This document shows positions 40,906 through 47,176 of a stretch of 64,000 nucleotides of DNA, in pieces. The notes below the pieces were generated by a model. It was not told where the DNA came from and did no database searches. It saw nothing but the letters and a program-made list of their open reading frames with translations. Positions within the stretch are counted from its first letter, which is position 1. Each line of letters starts with the position of its first letter. A program made the position numbers and the translations under genes. The DNA comes from Pelomyxa schiedti (Eukaryota; Protista; Evosea): positions 75,095 to 139,094 of the forward strand of contig JAHLWZ010000801.1 of NCBI GenBank assembly GCA_020536535.1. Direction: 5' to 3'.

Positions 40906-42081
40906 ATGTCAGGGGTTGTTAATGGCTCTTCGGTGATGCGCTGTGGGCCACTTTCCGTCCCACGGAAGCGCTTCCCGGAGGAGCTGGATTCTCTAAGTGA
41001 AGAGGAAGTAGATGATGAAGAAGAGGATGAGGATGCTCCTCAAGGAGAGACCGAGGACGAGGAGTACCACCCCCACCATATCTTATTTTCCCTCACATCT
41101 TCGTCTTGAATGCCATTTCACCCTCATTCACTATTACACAGTGACCTTACCGATGCTGCCGTATTACTCTTAAAGCTGTCTCAAAGTCCCACCGCACCAG
41201 CTACCTTACATACCCCTGTACCTCACCCCCCAATGCCAGCTCCAAAGCCTAAGCGCCAACGCACTAGCCCCGAGCAGTTAGACCTGCTAGAAATGATGTT
41301 TCAAACAAATACCATGCCAAACCAACAGACACGGCTTCACCTTGCTGCAGAGTTGGGAATGTCCACGCGCAGGATACAGATATGGTTTCAAAACAAACGC
41401 GCAAAGGTGCGACGTACATCAATGAGACAAGACGTTGTGGTACCAAAACCCCTGCAACCACCTCTACCAGTGCAACAGCTCCCGACCACAACCAGTCAGC
41501 AGAGTGGTATTCAACAAACATTACAGAAGCACCAACAGAAGTGTGTGGGTGCACCCACATCACCACTGTTGTCACCAACTGTGCTATCCGGCACACCAAT
41601 ATCAAATGTGTTTACTACAACACTTCCGCTGAGCTCTTCTGTTACTTCTACTACAGCCTCACATACCGCCGCCATACACACCAAGTCTGGGCTATCCTCT
41701 TCTCCCCCTAACGGGATTGAGGACATCACATCCCCATGTGGTTCTCCACCCTCTACCGCCCGTAATGGCCCAACTCGCAACTTTTCCTCCTCCCTTGCCT
41801 CCATGCTTTCACTTAGCATACCGCCCACCACTGCAAACAACTCCCTCCCCCCCAGTATCACTGTCACCCCACCACCAACTCCCAAACCCTCAGCAGCCGC
41901 AGTAGCAGCAGCCGTTGCCGCCGCGGTAGCAGTTGCAGTGAAACCCCCGCCAACAGCAAGCCCATCCTCCCCTTCCACAAATGCAACAACCCCCAGCTGC
42001 TCTACTCCCGGCACAGCAATATTGCCTTCCTTGGAGCAACAAGGCCTCCTGTCTGTGGGAGGCTCTTTTTTGAGGTACTAG
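40906..42081 (+). CDS. Homeobox transcription factor (Q50 homeodomain)
   Basis: KPKRQRTSPEQLDLLEMMFQTNTMPNQQTRLHLAAELGMSTRRIQIWFQNKRAKVRR; acidic first exon; one short intron near 41062-41140; TAG at 42079-42081. Confidence 0.92.
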
Positions 42082-42205
42082 TAGAAGAAACGAATTTTTT
42101 CCTCCCCTTTCCAAAAGCTCAACCTTGCTTGAACAGCAGCAAGTTTAACTTACTTGCCAAGGTGTTTGATATTTTAATGAATTGATTGAATGATTGGTTG
42201 TACTT

Positions 42206-45200
42206 CTAACTCTTTGTTGAAGAGGGGGTGGGGGAGGCTGATGGTGTTTCCTGCTTTGGCGGAAGGGCCTCAGCTCTCCCACTGACTCCTCCACCAGAGC
42301 TCTTTGCCTTCGTTTCAGCCTCCAGCAGGGCTGACAGCCTGTTTCCGCCTGCTCTCAGCCTGAGCATGTTCAATACAAGGGTTGATACAACTTCGGCTGC
42401 CGATTCTGGGTCTTGACCCCCAGAGTAGATACTGTTGACCACATTGTATTCCCACCCACTGGGTGATGCACCTTTGTTGTGCCGTAATGCTGCATTTCGT
42501 GTTTCTGGATCAGTTATGTGGTAGGCAACATAAGCACTGAGTGCGCGGGAGGCATCAGCGCCGCCTCCGGGGCGTTCGCCTACGAGCATAACCACAACTT
42601 TGGGGTTGAGAATGGCCCCAAGGTCCTCTATCAGCTTCACGCGGGCGTATCGGGCAACTATGAGTTTTCCCAGGCGTGCGCTATGGACTCATTCAGAAAA
42701 CAAAAGCGGACAAATTTAGAGATACCCGGAAGCTTTTAGAGTCTCTTCAAGAATAGGCAACATAATTGGTACATTGTAATGTATGGCTTCGGCACTCAGG
42801 CCGTCAGATATAACAATCTATTGCATCTTGTTAACTTGGTGATGAAGATAGTAAGAGAACCTGAATGTCCATACTCTCTGCAGTTAATTTTGTTCTTGAA
42901 GTGGGATCCAACTTCTGCCCAAGAATGGGATCTCCCAAGTACTTTTCCTTGGAAGGAGCTTGGGTTCCAATAATACGGAACCTGAACAGGTTGGTTCAAG
43001 TGGAAAAAGGGCAATCCATACTCAAAAGCAGAGAGCTTGGCTAAATTTAATTCGGAAAAAACAGCCTCCTTTGCGATTTCCATATCTTTGTATGTGAGGG
43101 GTGACGTTGTGTCTGAGAGATGGTATACTTGCGCGCATAGTTCGTTGAACCTTATTAGCAGGGCAGGGTCCTGCACTTTCAAGCCCCCAAAGCATGTTGG
43201 TGGGCTAGCGAAAACATAAACCCAAGGAAGGAAACGAGGAAGAGAAACCTTCTTTAGCCTCTGGAATTCTTCTTCATTTTCACAGAAGATTCTTGGGTTC
43301 CCCCAGTTGGGACCACGCTTGATTAGACCATCCTTTTCCACAAATATGCCTCGTTTGATACCCCATTTTGCAAACTCTGCTGCCGGTTGCAGTGCATGCA
43401 CCTGAAAGTGGGTGTTACATTTAGATTCGTGTGACGACTCAGGTTCGGTTACCTCCCGCAGAGTCTGCACGTTATGGCCACTTGTTGTAAAATAGCCAAG
43501 CATCCTATCAGAATTCTTGAGAGAACAAAGTCAGTTGAAGTTACATTTGTGCTTTGTACTAACCAAGTATACATCCATAAAAAATGCTGTTCCAGCAGCG
43601 GTGCACAACTGTGTAGCCATCTATTGGTAGACATTAGGGTTTACATGAGAATTCAGAACAAGATTACTTGCTGAGCTTCGATAGTAATTTGTGAATGCAA
43701 AGTAAAGCACGGATCCATGCCCATTGGAAGCCCCAGAACTTTGCCACAGAAGTTATCTTGAAGACTAGAAACAATAAGTTGCATGCTGTCCTTATGAGTT
43801 TCTGGGCCAATAAAGCCTGTGAAGCTAAGTTATTTTAAATTTGACCATAAAGGGAGAATATCTCCAAATGACATACCTGTTACGTTATTGACCATAAAGG
43901 GAGAATATCTTCTTGCAAGTCCATACTTCAAAGCCTTTGGTTGTTGATGAACATTGAGTACGAAACAGAAATAGACAAACCTCGCAAGTTGTCATATCAA
44001 TTCCATTGTTTTTTCCATAGGTCATTTCACTGGAGGTGCAAGTAAGCTACAAAGAGACACCCACGCGAATACCTTCCTTGACCTGTCTCAAAATACATGA
44101 AATTCTTTGTTATACCAGTTCTTTTTGCATTTCTCAGCATTGTATAATAAGCACTGTCAAGCAAGTCAACAGTGACATCAAACTCCTCGGATAAAACGCG
44201 ATCTGTCCCTGCAATACTTTGGAACAAGATGTCCAAAGGAGCACCTTTGAAGGTGAATAGTTGTATTGTGCAATAAAACTGGAACCTCGCTCAATGCAAG
44301 CCAATTGTGTACGAACATGTCCTAATGTGCAAATTTGTGTAGGAATATCAAATTTCTCCCGGATTGAATTGAGGCGAGTAAGTACTCGAGACATGCTGTC
44401 AGGTGTGTCAATTGCTGGATTAACTCCAATGAGGCAGTCACCAACTCCCATTGAGAGTCCCACGTATCTAATTATGTCAGTACCCATTTTCCTCACTGCA
44501 ACACTACTGGATAAAGTATGCAGACATAATTGATTTTGTTATAACATTAAAATTCCAGTAGTGAATGGTAGAACATACAAGAAGCAACAAGATAAACACA
44601 CGTTAGGAAGGAAATGCCATCAACATCATCCATTTGGTGATTGGGTTGAAGTCGGGCAGAAAGAGTGCCAGGAACACCTAATGTGGATCTAGCTTTTGAT
44701 GGGAATGATATTCGCTTTGGTACGCAAATCAACTCATGAATATCCATTAACTTAGCAACTGCAGCAATCATGACACCTAGCAAGAGGGGAAAAAAAAGTG
44801 AGGGAGGCTGAAATGGCTTTGAACCTCAACCTGTTAACCCTCGCCCAACTCTCGCAATCTCTGGTGCATCACTGTTCAACAAATCTGGTGTGAACGTTAA
44901 CAAAGAATTCCCTGATTTGGCAGAAGGACTATGAGCTCACGGTCTTTTAGCTGACCCACTGTCATGTTACGAATAGTTGGCCATACATCCATATCAAGAT
45001 CGTAGTTCACACGCATAACAGAGTCAACTTGGCCTCTTTCATCCAGTAGTGGGTGATCATATCTAGATACAGGGAGAGCAATTGAGAACCAAAAGGAAAA
45101 GAAAAAAAAAAAACCGCGATGCCGGTGGTGTGGGAGTGTGGGCTACATGTGCTGAAGAGTGAGGCCGCTCAGTGCCTGCCTCGCTGCCTCTCGTCCCACA

Positions 45201-45558
45201 TGTGTGACAATGACGAGGCCTTGATCGCCCGACTTGGCAAAGTCGGCAGCAGCAAGAAGTTGCTTCAGACCGTCGAAGTTGTAAGTGTGTCCAAACAGTT
45301 CAAAGGAGTATCTCTCGTCAGGCTGTGGTGGGGGCACATAAATTCTATCGAGCTCTTTCAGCCTCTGTTAATAATAGATTCGGAGGGGGAAAAGTCAATA
45401 CAACATTACATGTGTTACTGGTTGCCAAATTAAAAAAAAAAAGAAATCACCAAATGCAGAGTGGTTTCAACGGCGGAGACAGGCCTGGAGGCAGCATGAT
45501 CTACAGTCGGAGGCACGACTGTGACAACTGTCGAGGTTGTTTTTGCTTCGGAAGTCAT
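42206..45558 (-). CDS. eutBC: Fused ethanolamine ammonia-lyase large + small subunit (EutB-EutC), adenosylcobalamin-dependent, intron-containing
   Basis: EutB: LKQLLAAADFAKSGD, REAARQALSGLTL, SARLQPNH, GVGDCLIGVNPAID, PTQICTLGHV, FQSIAGT, FMYFETGQG, GLARRYSPFMVNNVTGFIGPE, LQDNFCGKVLGLPMGMDPCFT, MLGYFTTSGH. EutC: KVVVMLVGERPGGGADASRALSAYV...YNVVNSIYSGG. About ten or more GT-AG introns; N-terminal exon from ATG 45558 inferred. Confidence 0.92.
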
Positions 45559-45892
45559 GGCCCTACCCCGGTGTTGCAATTAAGTAGAGAGATCAAAGTT
45601 TCTTCCTGCGATTTCGTTCCTCGCTGTTTCTCGAAACCTTCAATTCATCACTTTCTTCGGTTCAGGCCTCAACAGGCAGTTGTGCGTGGCTCGTGGGGGT
45701 TCGAACAGCTCGCTCTGTAATTCGGGAAACTCTCGGTGAGTTGACTCCACAGATCCTCTGTGAGACGATCACTTTTCCCGGATCGAAAAGGGGAACGACT
45801 CCTTTGGAGAAAAAGTTCATTGACTTCTTGATATTTTCCCTCGGTGTTTGGGGAGCGTACAAAAAGACGACGGTGGGTGCGAAGACCGATCA

Positions 45893-47176
45893 ATGTCGAG
45901 TGAAGGCAGTGAGAGTTCCTACATAGATCCAGTTCATACTTTATCCTTCACTTTGCGGATTGTTTCTATCTTCACAATTCTGCTTTGTGGTTGTGCTGGT
46001 GCGTTAAAGTTGGCGTTATTTCTTTCCCTCATTTGGGTTTTCGCAAGGTGTCTCCACGCCGTTGATATTACGAGGATGTACTAAACTCTCCGCTGACCAC
46101 ATGATTTTTATGTTGGGGAAGACGTTTGGCGCTGGCGTCGTTATTGCCACAGCCTTTATTCATATCATGCCATCCGCTCAGGAGTTGTTGGCCGAATGTT
46201 GGCCAGATGTATGCTACCCGAATTCCAAAAGCTACAGCCCATCTTAAAATAACTTCAAGGTAGAATATCCTGTATCCTTGTTGATTTCTATGGTCTCTAT
46301 AATTCTTGTGCTTCTTCTTGAGCAAGCAATCTCTCACGCTTTAAAATCCCTCACCAGTCCTGGAAAGAGAAAAAATGATGATGACTATTATGTTAGTGGC
46401 CTTTCTTCAAATCCGTTCCATTCCCCTCCCCCTAAAGGCTTGAAGGCGGACACTCGCACTACAACACTCAATACACTACATGCACCTTTGTTTCATTCAA
46501 GACAGAATATACAGTATAAACATCTGGTAGAAGAGGGAAATGATGCTACAGCCAACCAGGCCCATGCTCCTGAACATGAACATGAACACGAACATGAACA
46601 CCATGGTCATGAACATGCACTGCTCAGTGTGTTTTACATTACAAGCATAATTTCACCAACTTCGTGCTCAAATCTTGCATAGAACCTGGAGTTACAGTTC
46701 AGGCATATGTTGTGGCTCATGTACTTGAATTTGGAATTGCATTACACAGTATAATCATTGGAATGGCCTTGGGTGCTTCAACCGATGAATCGGACGTACA
46801 AGCACTGCTCATTGCGTTGACATTCCATCAGTTCTTTGAAGGCATAGCCCTGGGTGTAAGTGTCTCTGAAGCACAACTGTCCGTACCAAGACAGCTCTTC
46901 ATGATCACTGTATTCAGCATCACAACGCCATGCGGAATAGCCCTTGGAATCGGCCTTTCACTCATCAACGAAGCGGACTCTTATCAGTCTCTTCTCACCC
47001 AAGGACTTCTAGACAGTGTGAGTTGTGGAATTTTAATCTTTATGTCCCTAGTGGACATGGTGGCTGAAGACTTTCACAAAGAAATTCTGGATAAAAAGCC
47101 ACTACTACGATACTGGCTTTTATTGGCCATGTCATTGGGTGCTGCAGCCATGGCTGTAATTGGGTTGTGGGCCTAA
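45893..47176 (+). CDS. ZIP-family (Zrt/Irt-like) divalent metal transporter
   Basis: GKTFGAGVVIATAFIHIMPSA, His-rich loop HEHEHEHEHHGHEH, signature VLEFGIALHSIIIGMALG and ALTFHQFFEGIALG; TAA at 47174-47176. Confidence 0.93.

Follow-up and report, generated by a model that had tools for sequence, protein, structure and literature searches.

Does the nuclear genome of the anaerobic amoeba Pelomyxa schiedti encode an ethanolamine ammonia-lyase (EAL), and if so, where did the gene come from and what could the enzyme do in its host? The question is raised by a locus at 42206-45558 of a 64,000-nucleotide stretch of P. schiedti DNA (the window), for which a first-pass annotation had proposed EutB and EutC in one spliced reading frame. 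To our knowledge, hardly any B12-dependent enzymes other than methionine synthase, methylmalonyl-CoA mutase and class II ribonucleotide reductase have been described from eukaryotes. No description of EAL in any eukaryote was found in the literature searched, and the gene is not mentioned in the P. schiedti papers, neither in their text nor in the accessible supplements. The best explanation for the locus as a whole, which we hold with considerable confidence, is a nuclear single-chain EAL, presumably AdoCbl-dependent, of bacterial eutBC descent. A spliced and expressed EAL, present in three copies in an amoeba, would add an enzyme class to the eukaryotic B12 list.

Structure and expression of the gene

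A profile search placed matches to EutB (PF06751) and EutC (PF05985) on minus-strand segments of exon size within 42206-45558. An exon model was assembled by hand and then corrected with RNA splice joints. The coding span (45558-42206, minus strand) has 18 exons and 17 GT-AG introns of 40-134 bp. An open CDS of 2388 nt together with 965 nt of intron makes up 42206..45558, the product has 795 aa, and the start codon and the stop codon fall precisely on the two ends proposed at first. The RNA joints, the open CDS and the full length of both domains likewise bear out that EutB and EutC share one spliced frame. GT-AG introns had been expected too, but their number, put at about ten or more, is actually 17. 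An annotation of the gene exists in GenBank, where a protein 100% identical to the model is named 'ethanolamine ammonia-lyase [Pelomyxa schiedti]' (P0262). EutBC is therefore not new at the database level; it is a new eukaryotic member of a known enzyme family.

All exons lie on the minus strand. Exon 1 (45451..45558; aa 1-36) begins at the first ATG after an in-frame stop and encodes a 36-aa N-terminal extension, predicted to be disordered and without counterpart in bacterial homologues. The first residues of exon 2 (45147..45364; aa 37-108.7) coincide with the start of the bacterial proteins; the EutB domain starts in this exon, and its joint to exon 3 (44941..45062), 45062|45147, is seen in RNA. 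Exon 4 (44831..44884) has 54 nt; its upstream joint is marked by a 13-nt loose end and its downstream joint by frame and homology only. Exon 5 (44602..44776) carries RLQPNH, exon 6 (44286..44467) GVNP and exon 7 (44073..44244) YFETGQG; exons 5 to 7 have RNA joints, as have exons 8 (43981..44029) and 9 (43877..43934). The motif PMGMDPC is in exon 10 (43668..43816), M444 in exon 11 (43564..43620) and Y456 in exon 12 (43453..43515). Exon 13 (43249..43401) holds the end of EutB, the linker and the start of EutC, and exon 14 (43129..43204) holds AGPCPAN with C534. Exons 15 (43022..43085) and 16 (42861..42981) are again bounded by RNA joints, exon 17 (42726..42817) contains the EutC motif IVISDGLS, and exon 18 (42206..42680) encodes the C-terminal half of EutC and a disordered tail (770-795) before the TAG stop at 42208-42206.

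Exon 14 was revealed only through RNA joints. A single 78-bp in-frame intron at 43248-43171 had been considered and was rejected by these joints; the true introns are 43248-43205 and 43128-43086, which flank a 76-nt exon in another frame. Adopting this exon raised the identity to homologues.

How well is splicing documented? Three single-cell transcriptomes yielded RNA contigs in which 14 of the 17 joints are explicit. Intron 1 is backed by the coordinates and depth of one RNA contig, intron 3 by the loose end and intron 4 by frame and homology. When splice joints were sought in a DNA run, none appeared. Thus eutBC is a nuclear, intron-rich, transcribed and correctly spliced Pelomyxa gene. Note that bacterial and archaeal endosymbionts fill the P. 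schiedti cells and that the assembly comes from single-cell data (PMC10579272, PMC8887013), which would favor contamination by a bacterium or symbiont, or an assembly chimera. However, 17 spliceosomal introns are present in the DNA and removed in RNA, and the spliced RNA contigs refute such an origin. Moreover, the GenBank contig is 139 kb long, the gene is flanked on it by a homeodomain gene and, upstream, by a divergently transcribed and spliced ZIP transporter gene, and its GC content is similar to that of its surroundings. The chance that the gene is foreign DNA in the assembly is vanishingly small.

Domains, residues and predicted fold

Both domains are essentially complete. EutB, the large TIM-barrel subunit, scores 454.6 bits (Pfam gathering cut-off 25), with residues 64-493 covering profile positions 1-430 of 435, and EutC, the small subunit, scores 153 bits (cut-off 25.8), with residues 513-753 covering positions 2-234 of 235; the linker between them is short, about residues 494-512. 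Residues were mapped by alignment to PDB 3abo_A and 2qez_A. In this alignment R209, Q211, N242, E339 and D414 correspond to E. coli R160, Q162, N193, E287 and D362, and M444 and Y456, which are retained as well, to M392 and Y404. The first four of these had been named correctly from the motifs. The aspartate had been placed in QDNF, but that residue is D400 and aligns with E. coli D348; the true equivalent of D362 is D414 in PMGMDPC, so an aspartate is present there too. The tyrosine named in MLGY is Y456. We take Q162, N193 and D362 of E. coli EutB, from the 3ABO structure papers, to be substrate-binding or catalytic residues. E287 and R160 are experimentally critical in the E. coli enzyme (PMC4155860). 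The Arg, Gln and Asn positions are invariant in 61/61 aligned sequences and the Glu position in 60/61, and the single exception is the second P. schiedti copy P0010, because its faulty gene model skips the exon that bears the glutamate.

The AF2 model (pLDDT 89.7, pTM 0.88) is of high confidence throughout the EutB and EutC domains. With this predicted structure as the query, Foldseek gave TM scores, normalized by target, of 0.95 for 3abo_A (rmsd 1.9 A) and 0.79-0.81 for 3abo_B/D. The fold is thus predicted with high confidence to resemble the E. coli alpha-beta unit. Pelomyxa EutBC is a real and probably functional enzyme.

Three divergent copies in one genome

Is the enzyme encoded once? P. 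schiedti has three divergent EutBC copies, namely the present one, KAH3732714.1 (P0010) and KAH3744819.1 (P0025). They are only about 50-60% identical to each other, and the present copy is only about 49-52% identical to the other two. Those two are likewise single-chain and intron-rich, and they adjoin the eukaryotic genes ELP3, RhoGEF/RhoGAP and GATA. The exons of P0010 were located by exact-match blocks and ungapped tblastn. Its GenBank model is faulty: besides skipping the YFETGQG exon, it has some junctions that are not GT-AG and an unrelated N-terminal part of 478 aa. The length of this part would fit a fused EutA, but it has no Pfam match and is unlike EutA; it is probably an upstream gene merged into the faulty model. 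The GenBank model of P0025 is truncated, and the N-terminal part of EutB is present upstream in the DNA. All three copies have in common the derived changes E392Q and M403C, in columns that are at least 95% conserved in bacteria, and V273T is common to the two copies whose protein models cover that column. Between P0010 and P0025, 8/8 comparable intron positions coincide; none of them exactly matches an intron of the present copy.

The divergence of the copies raises a further question, whether the present copy still does the same work. It may have changed its function, acting on another amino alcohol or quaternary amine, handling the cofactor differently, or being a weakly active or inactive paralogue; in that case the ethanolamine work would fall to one of the other two copies. 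Besides the low identity among the copies, 25 of the 223 columns with a conservation of at least 95% hold a residue in the present one that differs from the bacterial consensus; bacterial members never exceed 10. One of these changes, R534C, falls in the EutC motif AGPRP; the Arg of bacteria and E. coli is kept in P0010 and P0025. There is also a precedent in Pelobacter carbinolicus, for whose duplicate fused eutBC genes different substrates, ethanolamine and choline, have been suggested (PMC3543383). Against this, all five E. coli substrate-binding residues as well as the equivalents of M392 and Y404 are retained, the frame is intact over 18 exons and transcribed in three cells, and the predicted model is confident across both domains. 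Position 534 is also not Arg in two distant fused outgroup proteins, which have Ala or Gly there. We therefore regard a change of function as rather unlikely, and continue with the reading of the gene as an EAL.

Relatives and origin

Where did the gene come from? Its nearest relatives are bacterial single-chain EutBC proteins, including those of myxobacteria such as Sorangium, with at most 57% identity to P0262. Among the best 120 matches of each of three database searches there is no other eukaryote; all are bacterial except for P. schiedti itself, the only eukaryote among hundreds of close homologues (short-fragment HMMER matches, which come with no organism names, were left out of the eukaryotic distribution). 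The Atlas clusters of close homologues are 93-100% Bacteria. A widespread eukaryotic clade, which the first-pass annotation had wanted checked, is thus not seen among the listed close homologues. Two partial EutBC proteins on metagenome contigs of 210 kb and 355 kb, P0018 and P0031, were considered as exon fragments from other eukaryotes and rejected; their neighbors are MraZ, a Mur ligase, a PBP and EutA, so they are bacterial genes split by frameshifts.

The bacterial compact single-chain proteins (Sorangium sp. WP_438040763.1 and those of Planctomycetaceae, Gemmataceae, Hyphomicrobium and Entomomonas) have about 730 aa and the same order of EutB, short linker and EutC. The Pelomyxa protein is 51-57% identical to them over the whole length, aligning end to end with P0012 and others; the motif with which they start at the N-terminus recurs in it directly after exon 1, and neither it nor they have a EutC encapsulation peptide. 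It differs from them in the 17 introns of its gene, in the disordered extensions of 36 aa at the N-terminus and roughly 26 aa at the C-terminus, and in having no adjacent eutA, whereas in the bacterial compact loci examined (L004 and L005) eutA (PF06277) lies directly upstream of eutBC. The fused form was first remarked on in eutBC1 and eutBC2 of Pelobacter carbinolicus, which has no eutA (PMC3543383). The resemblance to single-chain EutBC of some actinobacteria and myxobacteria, suggested at first, holds in that bacterial single-chain forms, those of myxobacteria included, are nearest. However, the form is widespread across Planctomycetota, Pseudomonadota, Desulfobacterota, Myxococcota and other phyla, and the tree does not single out the myxobacteria.

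On that tree, the 57 sequences from bacteria group in one clade (SH-aLRT 98) and the three Pelomyxa copies fall outside it. The branch of the Pelomyxa protein is long, at 1.1 with the median being 0.34, and so is that of the outgroup, so this placement is provisional. Constraining the three copies together improved the likelihood by 18.5 lnL (p-AU 0.75), and they are best placed as one clade. A myxobacterial affinity was 45.8 lnL worse (p-AU 0.045), and a specifically myxobacterial donor is marginally rejected.

Then could the gene be an ancient eukaryotic one, inherited vertically and lost almost everywhere, with no transfer from bacteria at all? Its very high intron density (17 introns), its position outside the sampled bacterial crown clade, and the ancestral Asp at 414, as in canonical EAL, where 52/57 bacterial compact-fused members have Ala, would agree with such a history. 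But the whole P. schiedti genome is intron-rich, with 7.43 introns per gene (PMC8887013), so the intron number cannot date eutBC, and the paralogues have no intron position that exactly matches one of the present copy. Furthermore, no other eukaryote is found among the listed top matches or in the Atlas clusters, papers on Archamoebae, those on Mastigamoeba included, do not mention the enzyme, and the single-chain architecture and 51-57% identity are common to one bacterial subfamily. Vertical inheritance is accordingly very improbable. Bacterial origin by lateral transfer, as proposed at first, is the best reading of these comparisons, and the pattern probably reflects a single old transfer, followed by duplication into three copies and heavy intron gain. 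Lateral transfer of metabolic genes into anaerobic protists is common, and because of this, and of the GenBank name being already correct, the practical weight of the finding is limited.

Proposed function and cofactor supply

How would such an enzyme work in the amoeba? We propose that AdoCbl would bind at the interface of EutB and EutC and that the enzyme would split ethanolamine into acetaldehyde and ammonia in the cytosol, with no microcompartment involved. The acetaldehyde would then pass to the aldehyde and alcohol dehydrogenases and the acetyl-CoA synthetase of the host. Prey-derived phosphatidylethanolamine may be the source of the substrate, and the corrinoid would come from prey or from cobalamin-producing endosymbionts, probably the latter. 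The reaction would add an ethanolamine branch, leading to acetaldehyde plus ammonia, which the metabolic map published for the P. schiedti consortium lacks, and it would give the host a concrete need for AdoCbl which such endosymbionts could supply.

Canonical EAL (E. coli, Salmonella and Listeria; 3ABO, 2QEZ) has the same two domains, fold and substrate-binding residues, at identities of about 38-39% for EutB and about 30% for EutC. It consists of two subunits arranged as (alpha-beta)6 inside the Eut microcompartment, whereas the amoeba enzyme is one polypeptide from a nuclear gene, with no microcompartment targeting peptide. Because EutC follows EutB in the same chain, it lacks the free N-terminus that would carry an encapsulation peptide. 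Unlike at canonical loci, no eut shell gene, eutA, eutT or eutE was detected in the flanking ORFs tested (about 35.8-52.7 kb), in agreement with the absence of eutA and eutT first noted for the window. Given the 36-aa extension at the N-terminus, the cytosolic location is a default assumption. A precedent for the microcompartment-free mode that the amoeba enzyme would need is found in Acinetobacter baumannii, whose EAL works without metabolosome, EutA or EutE (PMC9426561). That enzyme is unlike the amoeba protein in being bacterial, membrane-associated and made of two separate subunits, and close kinship is not indicated here.

The published host table lists ALDH, ADH, ACS, a B12-dependent methionine synthase and the AdoCbl-dependent IcmF (PMC10579272 supplement); neither EutA nor a corrinoid adenosyltransferase is found in the published P. 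schiedti host tables. In the published consortium data, Ca. Syntrophus pelomyxae and Ca. Methanoregula pelomyxae express cobalamin-synthesis genes. These observations allow a broader and decidedly tentative scenario: a host AdoCbl metabolism, with prokaryote-type B12 enzymes (three EutBC copies and IcmF) domesticated in the nuclear genome, might be fed by corrinoids from Ca. Syntrophus and Ca. Methanoregula. The lyase might then turn ethanolamine of digested membranes into ammonia for the host and, by way of acetaldehyde, provide the methanogenic consortium with acetate and reducing equivalents, without EutA or a microcompartment. If this were true, EAL would bring the B12-dependent enzyme classes of eukaryotes to four or five and would bind the partners of the Pelomyxa symbiosis at the molecular level.

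A probable trace of intron gain

The intron load of eutBC is about 7 introns per kb, and one of these introns may still tell how it arose. Intron 9 (43817..43876, minus strand; 60 nt) repeats the end of exon 9 in its 3' part, as a tandem copy that has diverged, and its 5' part resembles the start of exon 10. The alignment score is 59.5, against 20.2 +/- 4.6 for shuffles. From this pattern it looks as if a tandem duplication spanning a CAG|G site gave rise to the intron. The locus would then illustrate cleanly how a gene of bacterial descent gained introns at this density, with one of them still showing its origin.

Gene structure, expression and genomic setting

The lyase gene of the window is real, spliced and expressed. 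In a six-frame translation, the minus strand at 42000-45800 breaks into many short open pieces, which match EutB (PF06751) and EutC (PF05985) of Pfam in colinear order. Exons joined at GT-AG sites gave a complete frame that opens with the ATG at 45558 and closes with the TAG at 42206, exactly the ends given by the first-pass annotation. Is this frame used in the cell? Four public runs contain DNA of the window: three libraries of single-cell RNA and a DNA run, probably the source of the assembly. Their contigs were placed on 41900-46400. Of the 17 introns, 14 are skipped by RNA contigs at the predicted bases, all CT..AC on the plus strand and hence GT..AG on the strand of the gene; the skipped form is absent from the contigs of the DNA run over the same interval. 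Intron 1 is supported by the coordinates and depth of one RNA contig and intron 3 by a 13-nt loose end in RNA, and intron 4 was placed by reading frame and homology only. A single 78-bp intron of the first model was ruled out by the RNA contigs, which show two introns, 43248-43205 and 43128-43086, flanking a 76-nt exon. In its final form the gene model comprises 18 exons, and its 17 GT-AG introns measure 40-134 bp (twelve being 40-60 bp); the CDS is 2388 nt for 795 aa. The RNA contigs thus confirm the single spliced frame claimed at first pass, with 17 introns where "ten or more" had been counted.

A search by HMMER with the last exon as query, and two word-indexed searches after it, led to the GenBank entry "ethanolamine ammonia-lyase [Pelomyxa schiedti]" of 795 aa (P0262), on a 139-kb contig of this anaerobic archamoeba, to which the RNA-corrected model is 100% identical over all 795 residues. 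GenBank already has the gene under a correct model and name, but the literature apparently does not describe it. In the open-access literature no paper was found that mentions "Pelomyxa schiedti" with "ethanolamine", a search of mentions and not a proof; neither P. schiedti paper (PMC8887013, PMC10579272) mentions the enzyme in its text or available supplements; and "ethanolamine ammonia" does not occur together with Archamoebae, Mastigamoeba, Entamoeba, Anaeramoeba or anaerobic protists in the 25 open-access papers ranked best for such pairings. In the genome paper on Mastigamoeba and in a comparative one on Archamoebae, B12-dependent MetH is all that is mentioned.

Could the gene belong to a symbiont? 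Its introns are present in DNA and spliced from RNA, its neighbours are a homeodomain gene and an intron-bearing ZIP metal-transporter gene, and its GC content is like that of the surroundings. These features mark a eukaryotic gene and exclude symbiont contamination. The ZIP gene (45894-47176, plus strand; PF02535, 131 bits on the last exon) lies upstream and divergent, and its own 51-nt GT..AG intron at 46209-46259 is visible in RNA. Its putative start codon is about 335 bp from that of the lyase gene, and the two may share a promoter region. The homeodomain gene (41110-42081, plus strand; PF00046, 68.5 bits) converges on the lyase gene from downstream with about 125 bp between stop codons; RNA contigs are continuous from the 3' end of the one into the 3' end of the other, and the 3' UTRs may overlap.

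Enzyme identity and active site

The HMM search bore out the two-domain reading, with both domains near full length in P0262 (EutB: 454.6 bits, residues 64-493, profile positions 1-430 of 435; EutC: 153 bits, residues 513-753, positions 2-234 of 235). The protein aligns with E. coli EutB (PDB 3ABO chain A) at E 2.6e-96, also with Listeria EutB (2QEZ), and with E. coli EutC at E about 1e-22. Counted along the alignment, E. coli R160, Q162, N193, E287, D362, M392 and Y404 correspond to P0262 R209, Q211, N242, E339, D414, M444 and Y456, identical in each case. In the E. coli enzyme (3ABO structure) Q162, N193 and D362 serve as substrate ligands. The substrate-binding set read earlier from motifs stands for R/Q, N, E and Y, while its "D in QDNF" was misassigned: that residue is D400, equivalent to the invariant E. 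coli D348, and the intended equivalent of D362 is D414. Experiments on the E. coli enzyme showed E287 and R160 to be critical for Co-C homolysis and turnover (PMC4155860).

An AlphaFold2 model of P0262 built from 61 sequences has a mean pLDDT of 89.7 and a pTM of 0.88, with disorder at residues 1-32 and 770-795 only. In Foldseek it matches 3abo_A with TM 0.95 (rmsd 1.9 A) and EutC chains with 0.79-0.81. The next matches are diol and glycerol dehydratases, the next-closest folds expected in this superfamily. By every feature open to testing P0262 is a member of the ethanolamine ammonia-lyase family, and its activity is predicted from sequence and model. It is a eukaryotic addition to a known family, not another kind of system.

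Paralogues and origin

Two more P. schiedti proteins are named ethanolamine ammonia-lyase, KAH3732714.1 (P0010, 1144 aa) and KAH3744819.1 (P0025, 389 aa), on other contigs of GCA_020536535.1 with ELP3, RhoGEF/RhoGAP, GATA and PLAC8 genes as neighbours. The KAH3732714.1 model treats as intron a stretch of its locus (L002:6779-6933) that encodes "...HFLYFETGQGSCV", the catalytic Glu motif. Its 478-aa N-terminal part (L002:4001-5518) has no Pfam match and probably stems from an upstream gene merged into the model; the gene itself appears intact in sequence. The 389-aa model of KAH3744819.1 is too short, for the same strand farther upstream, at L003:3828-5039, encodes the absent part, the N-terminal two-thirds of EutB including SRLQPNH and GVNP, where GenBank annotates two small minus-strand genes. 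With three copies in one genome, sub- or neofunctionalisation of the window's copy is possible. It would fit the 25 departures of P0262 from the bacterial consensus among 223 highly conserved columns (bacterial maximum 10), R534C in the EutC motif AGPRP, which E. coli also has, among them; however, two distant fused outgroup proteins carry Ala or Gly at position 534.

Where did the gene come from? Three large searches, with the Sorangium single-chain protein P0012, a Pelomyxa paralogue and the window's protein as queries, gave thousands of matches. In each, the best 120 carry EutB and EutC in a single chain of about 730 aa, with named sources including Sorangium, Polyangiaceae, Gemmataceae, Planctomycetaceae, Pirellulaceae, Hyphomicrobium, Methylocystis, Desulfobulbaceae, Pseudomonas, Oceanospirillaceae and Entomomonas, and no eukaryote besides P. 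schiedti is among them. Atlas clusters with this architecture are 93-100% Bacteria. The fusion was called "unusual" in Pelobacter carbinolicus in 2012 (PMC3543383). It is evidently common in bacteria, and the view of it as an oddity of some actinobacteria and myxobacteria has to be given up, since the matches listed span many bacterial groups. Among these matches no bacterial member exceeds 57% identity to P0262, whereas most of those listed from different phyla share 66-72% with the Sorangium query.

A maximum-likelihood tree of 62 rows (LG+C20 PMSF, quick search) was rooted with the two distant fused proteins. In it the 57 bacterial sequences group as one clade (SH-aLRT 98) with the three Pelomyxa copies outside, P0010 and P0025 being sisters (SH-aLRT 91). 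Constraining the three copies together gives a likelihood 18.5 lnL better than the free quick search (p-AU 0.75). Joining them to Sorangium/Polyangiaceae is 45.8 lnL worse (p-AU 0.045), which marginally rejects a specific tie to myxobacteria. The basal position has independent support at one site: the D362 position is Asp in the window's copy, P0010, the outgroup and E. coli, and in the family alignment of 57 bacterial compact single-chain EutBC, 52 have Ala there, 4 have Ser or Gly, and one has Asp. The third copy (P0025 locus) has Ala, as seen in genomic DNA. With Ala where canonical EAL has Asp, the large bacterial subfamily might bind its substrate differently. At columns at least 95% conserved in bacteria, derived E392Q and M403C are common to all three Pelomyxa copies, and derived V273T is found in both copies whose protein models reach that column. 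As far as sequences can tell, the gene is of bacterial single-chain ancestry. Lateral transfer, as proposed at first pass, is the best reading: probably it happened once, long ago, from a stem or unsampled lineage of the bacterial single-chain family, and duplication followed. The tree placement is provisional because Pelomyxa and the outgroup are both long branches.

Intron gain

The mean for the P. schiedti genome is 7.43 introns per gene (PMC8887013), so 17 introns are usual in this host and stand out only through the bacterial origin of the gene. In a common alignment the eight introns of P0025 as annotated all fall on exon borders of P0010, and none coincides exactly with the 17 of the window's copy. 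Hence most introns postdate the first duplication. There are four near misses, 2-3 codons apart and in the same phase (344/347, 448/446, 546/549 and 607/609), between window introns at aa 343.7, 448, 545.3 and 607 and partners in L003 and L002. By a rough hand estimate, the chance of four near misses without an exact match is less than 1 in a thousand. Introns may have slid in frame, or insertions may have recurred at favoured sites. Intron 9 (60 nt; with exon 9 it spans 43817-43934 on the minus strand) looks to have been born by tandem duplication across a CAG|G site: the end of exon 9 recurs in diverged form in the last 46 nt of the intron, and the first 14 nt are similar to the beginning of exon 10. 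The alignment has a score of 59.5, where shuffles give 20.2 +/- 4.6, and both paralogues lack an intron at this position.

Accessory genes and cofactor supply

In two bacterial loci (Sorangium and a 5.3-Mb genome with P0270) eutA is directly upstream of the fused gene, and one of them has a permease, glutamine synthetase, Fe-ADH and aldehyde dehydrogenase close by. In contrast, none of these genes lies in the neighbourhood of the amoeba gene, where eutA had already been noted as absent at first pass. Can the enzyme work alone? By analogy it may, for A. baumannii EutBC supports growth without metabolosome, EutA or EutE (PMC9426561) and P. carbinolicus has fused eutBC genes and no eutA (PMC3543383). 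A 2023 consortium supplement (PMC10579272) lists for the host aldehyde and alcohol dehydrogenases, acetyl-CoA synthetases, glutamate dehydrogenase, B12-dependent methionine synthase and the AdoCbl-dependent isobutyryl-CoA mutase IcmF; ethanolamine ammonia-lyase is absent from this host table. Ca. Syntrophus pelomyxae and Ca. Methanoregula pelomyxae express cobalamin-synthesis and corrinoid adenosyltransferase genes (PMC10579272). From these precedents and gene tables, ethanolamine would be converted to acetaldehyde and ammonia in the cytosol, host dehydrogenases would take the acetaldehyde downstream, and prey or symbionts would supply the corrinoid. Exon 1 encodes a disordered N-terminal extension of 36 aa with much Ser, Thr and Val and few positive charges, and the C-terminus ends in -TKS; by eye neither terminus appears to resemble a classical mitochondrial or PTS1 signal. 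IcmF and the three ethanolamine ammonia-lyase copies hint at an unusually broad set of B12-dependent enzymes in this host.
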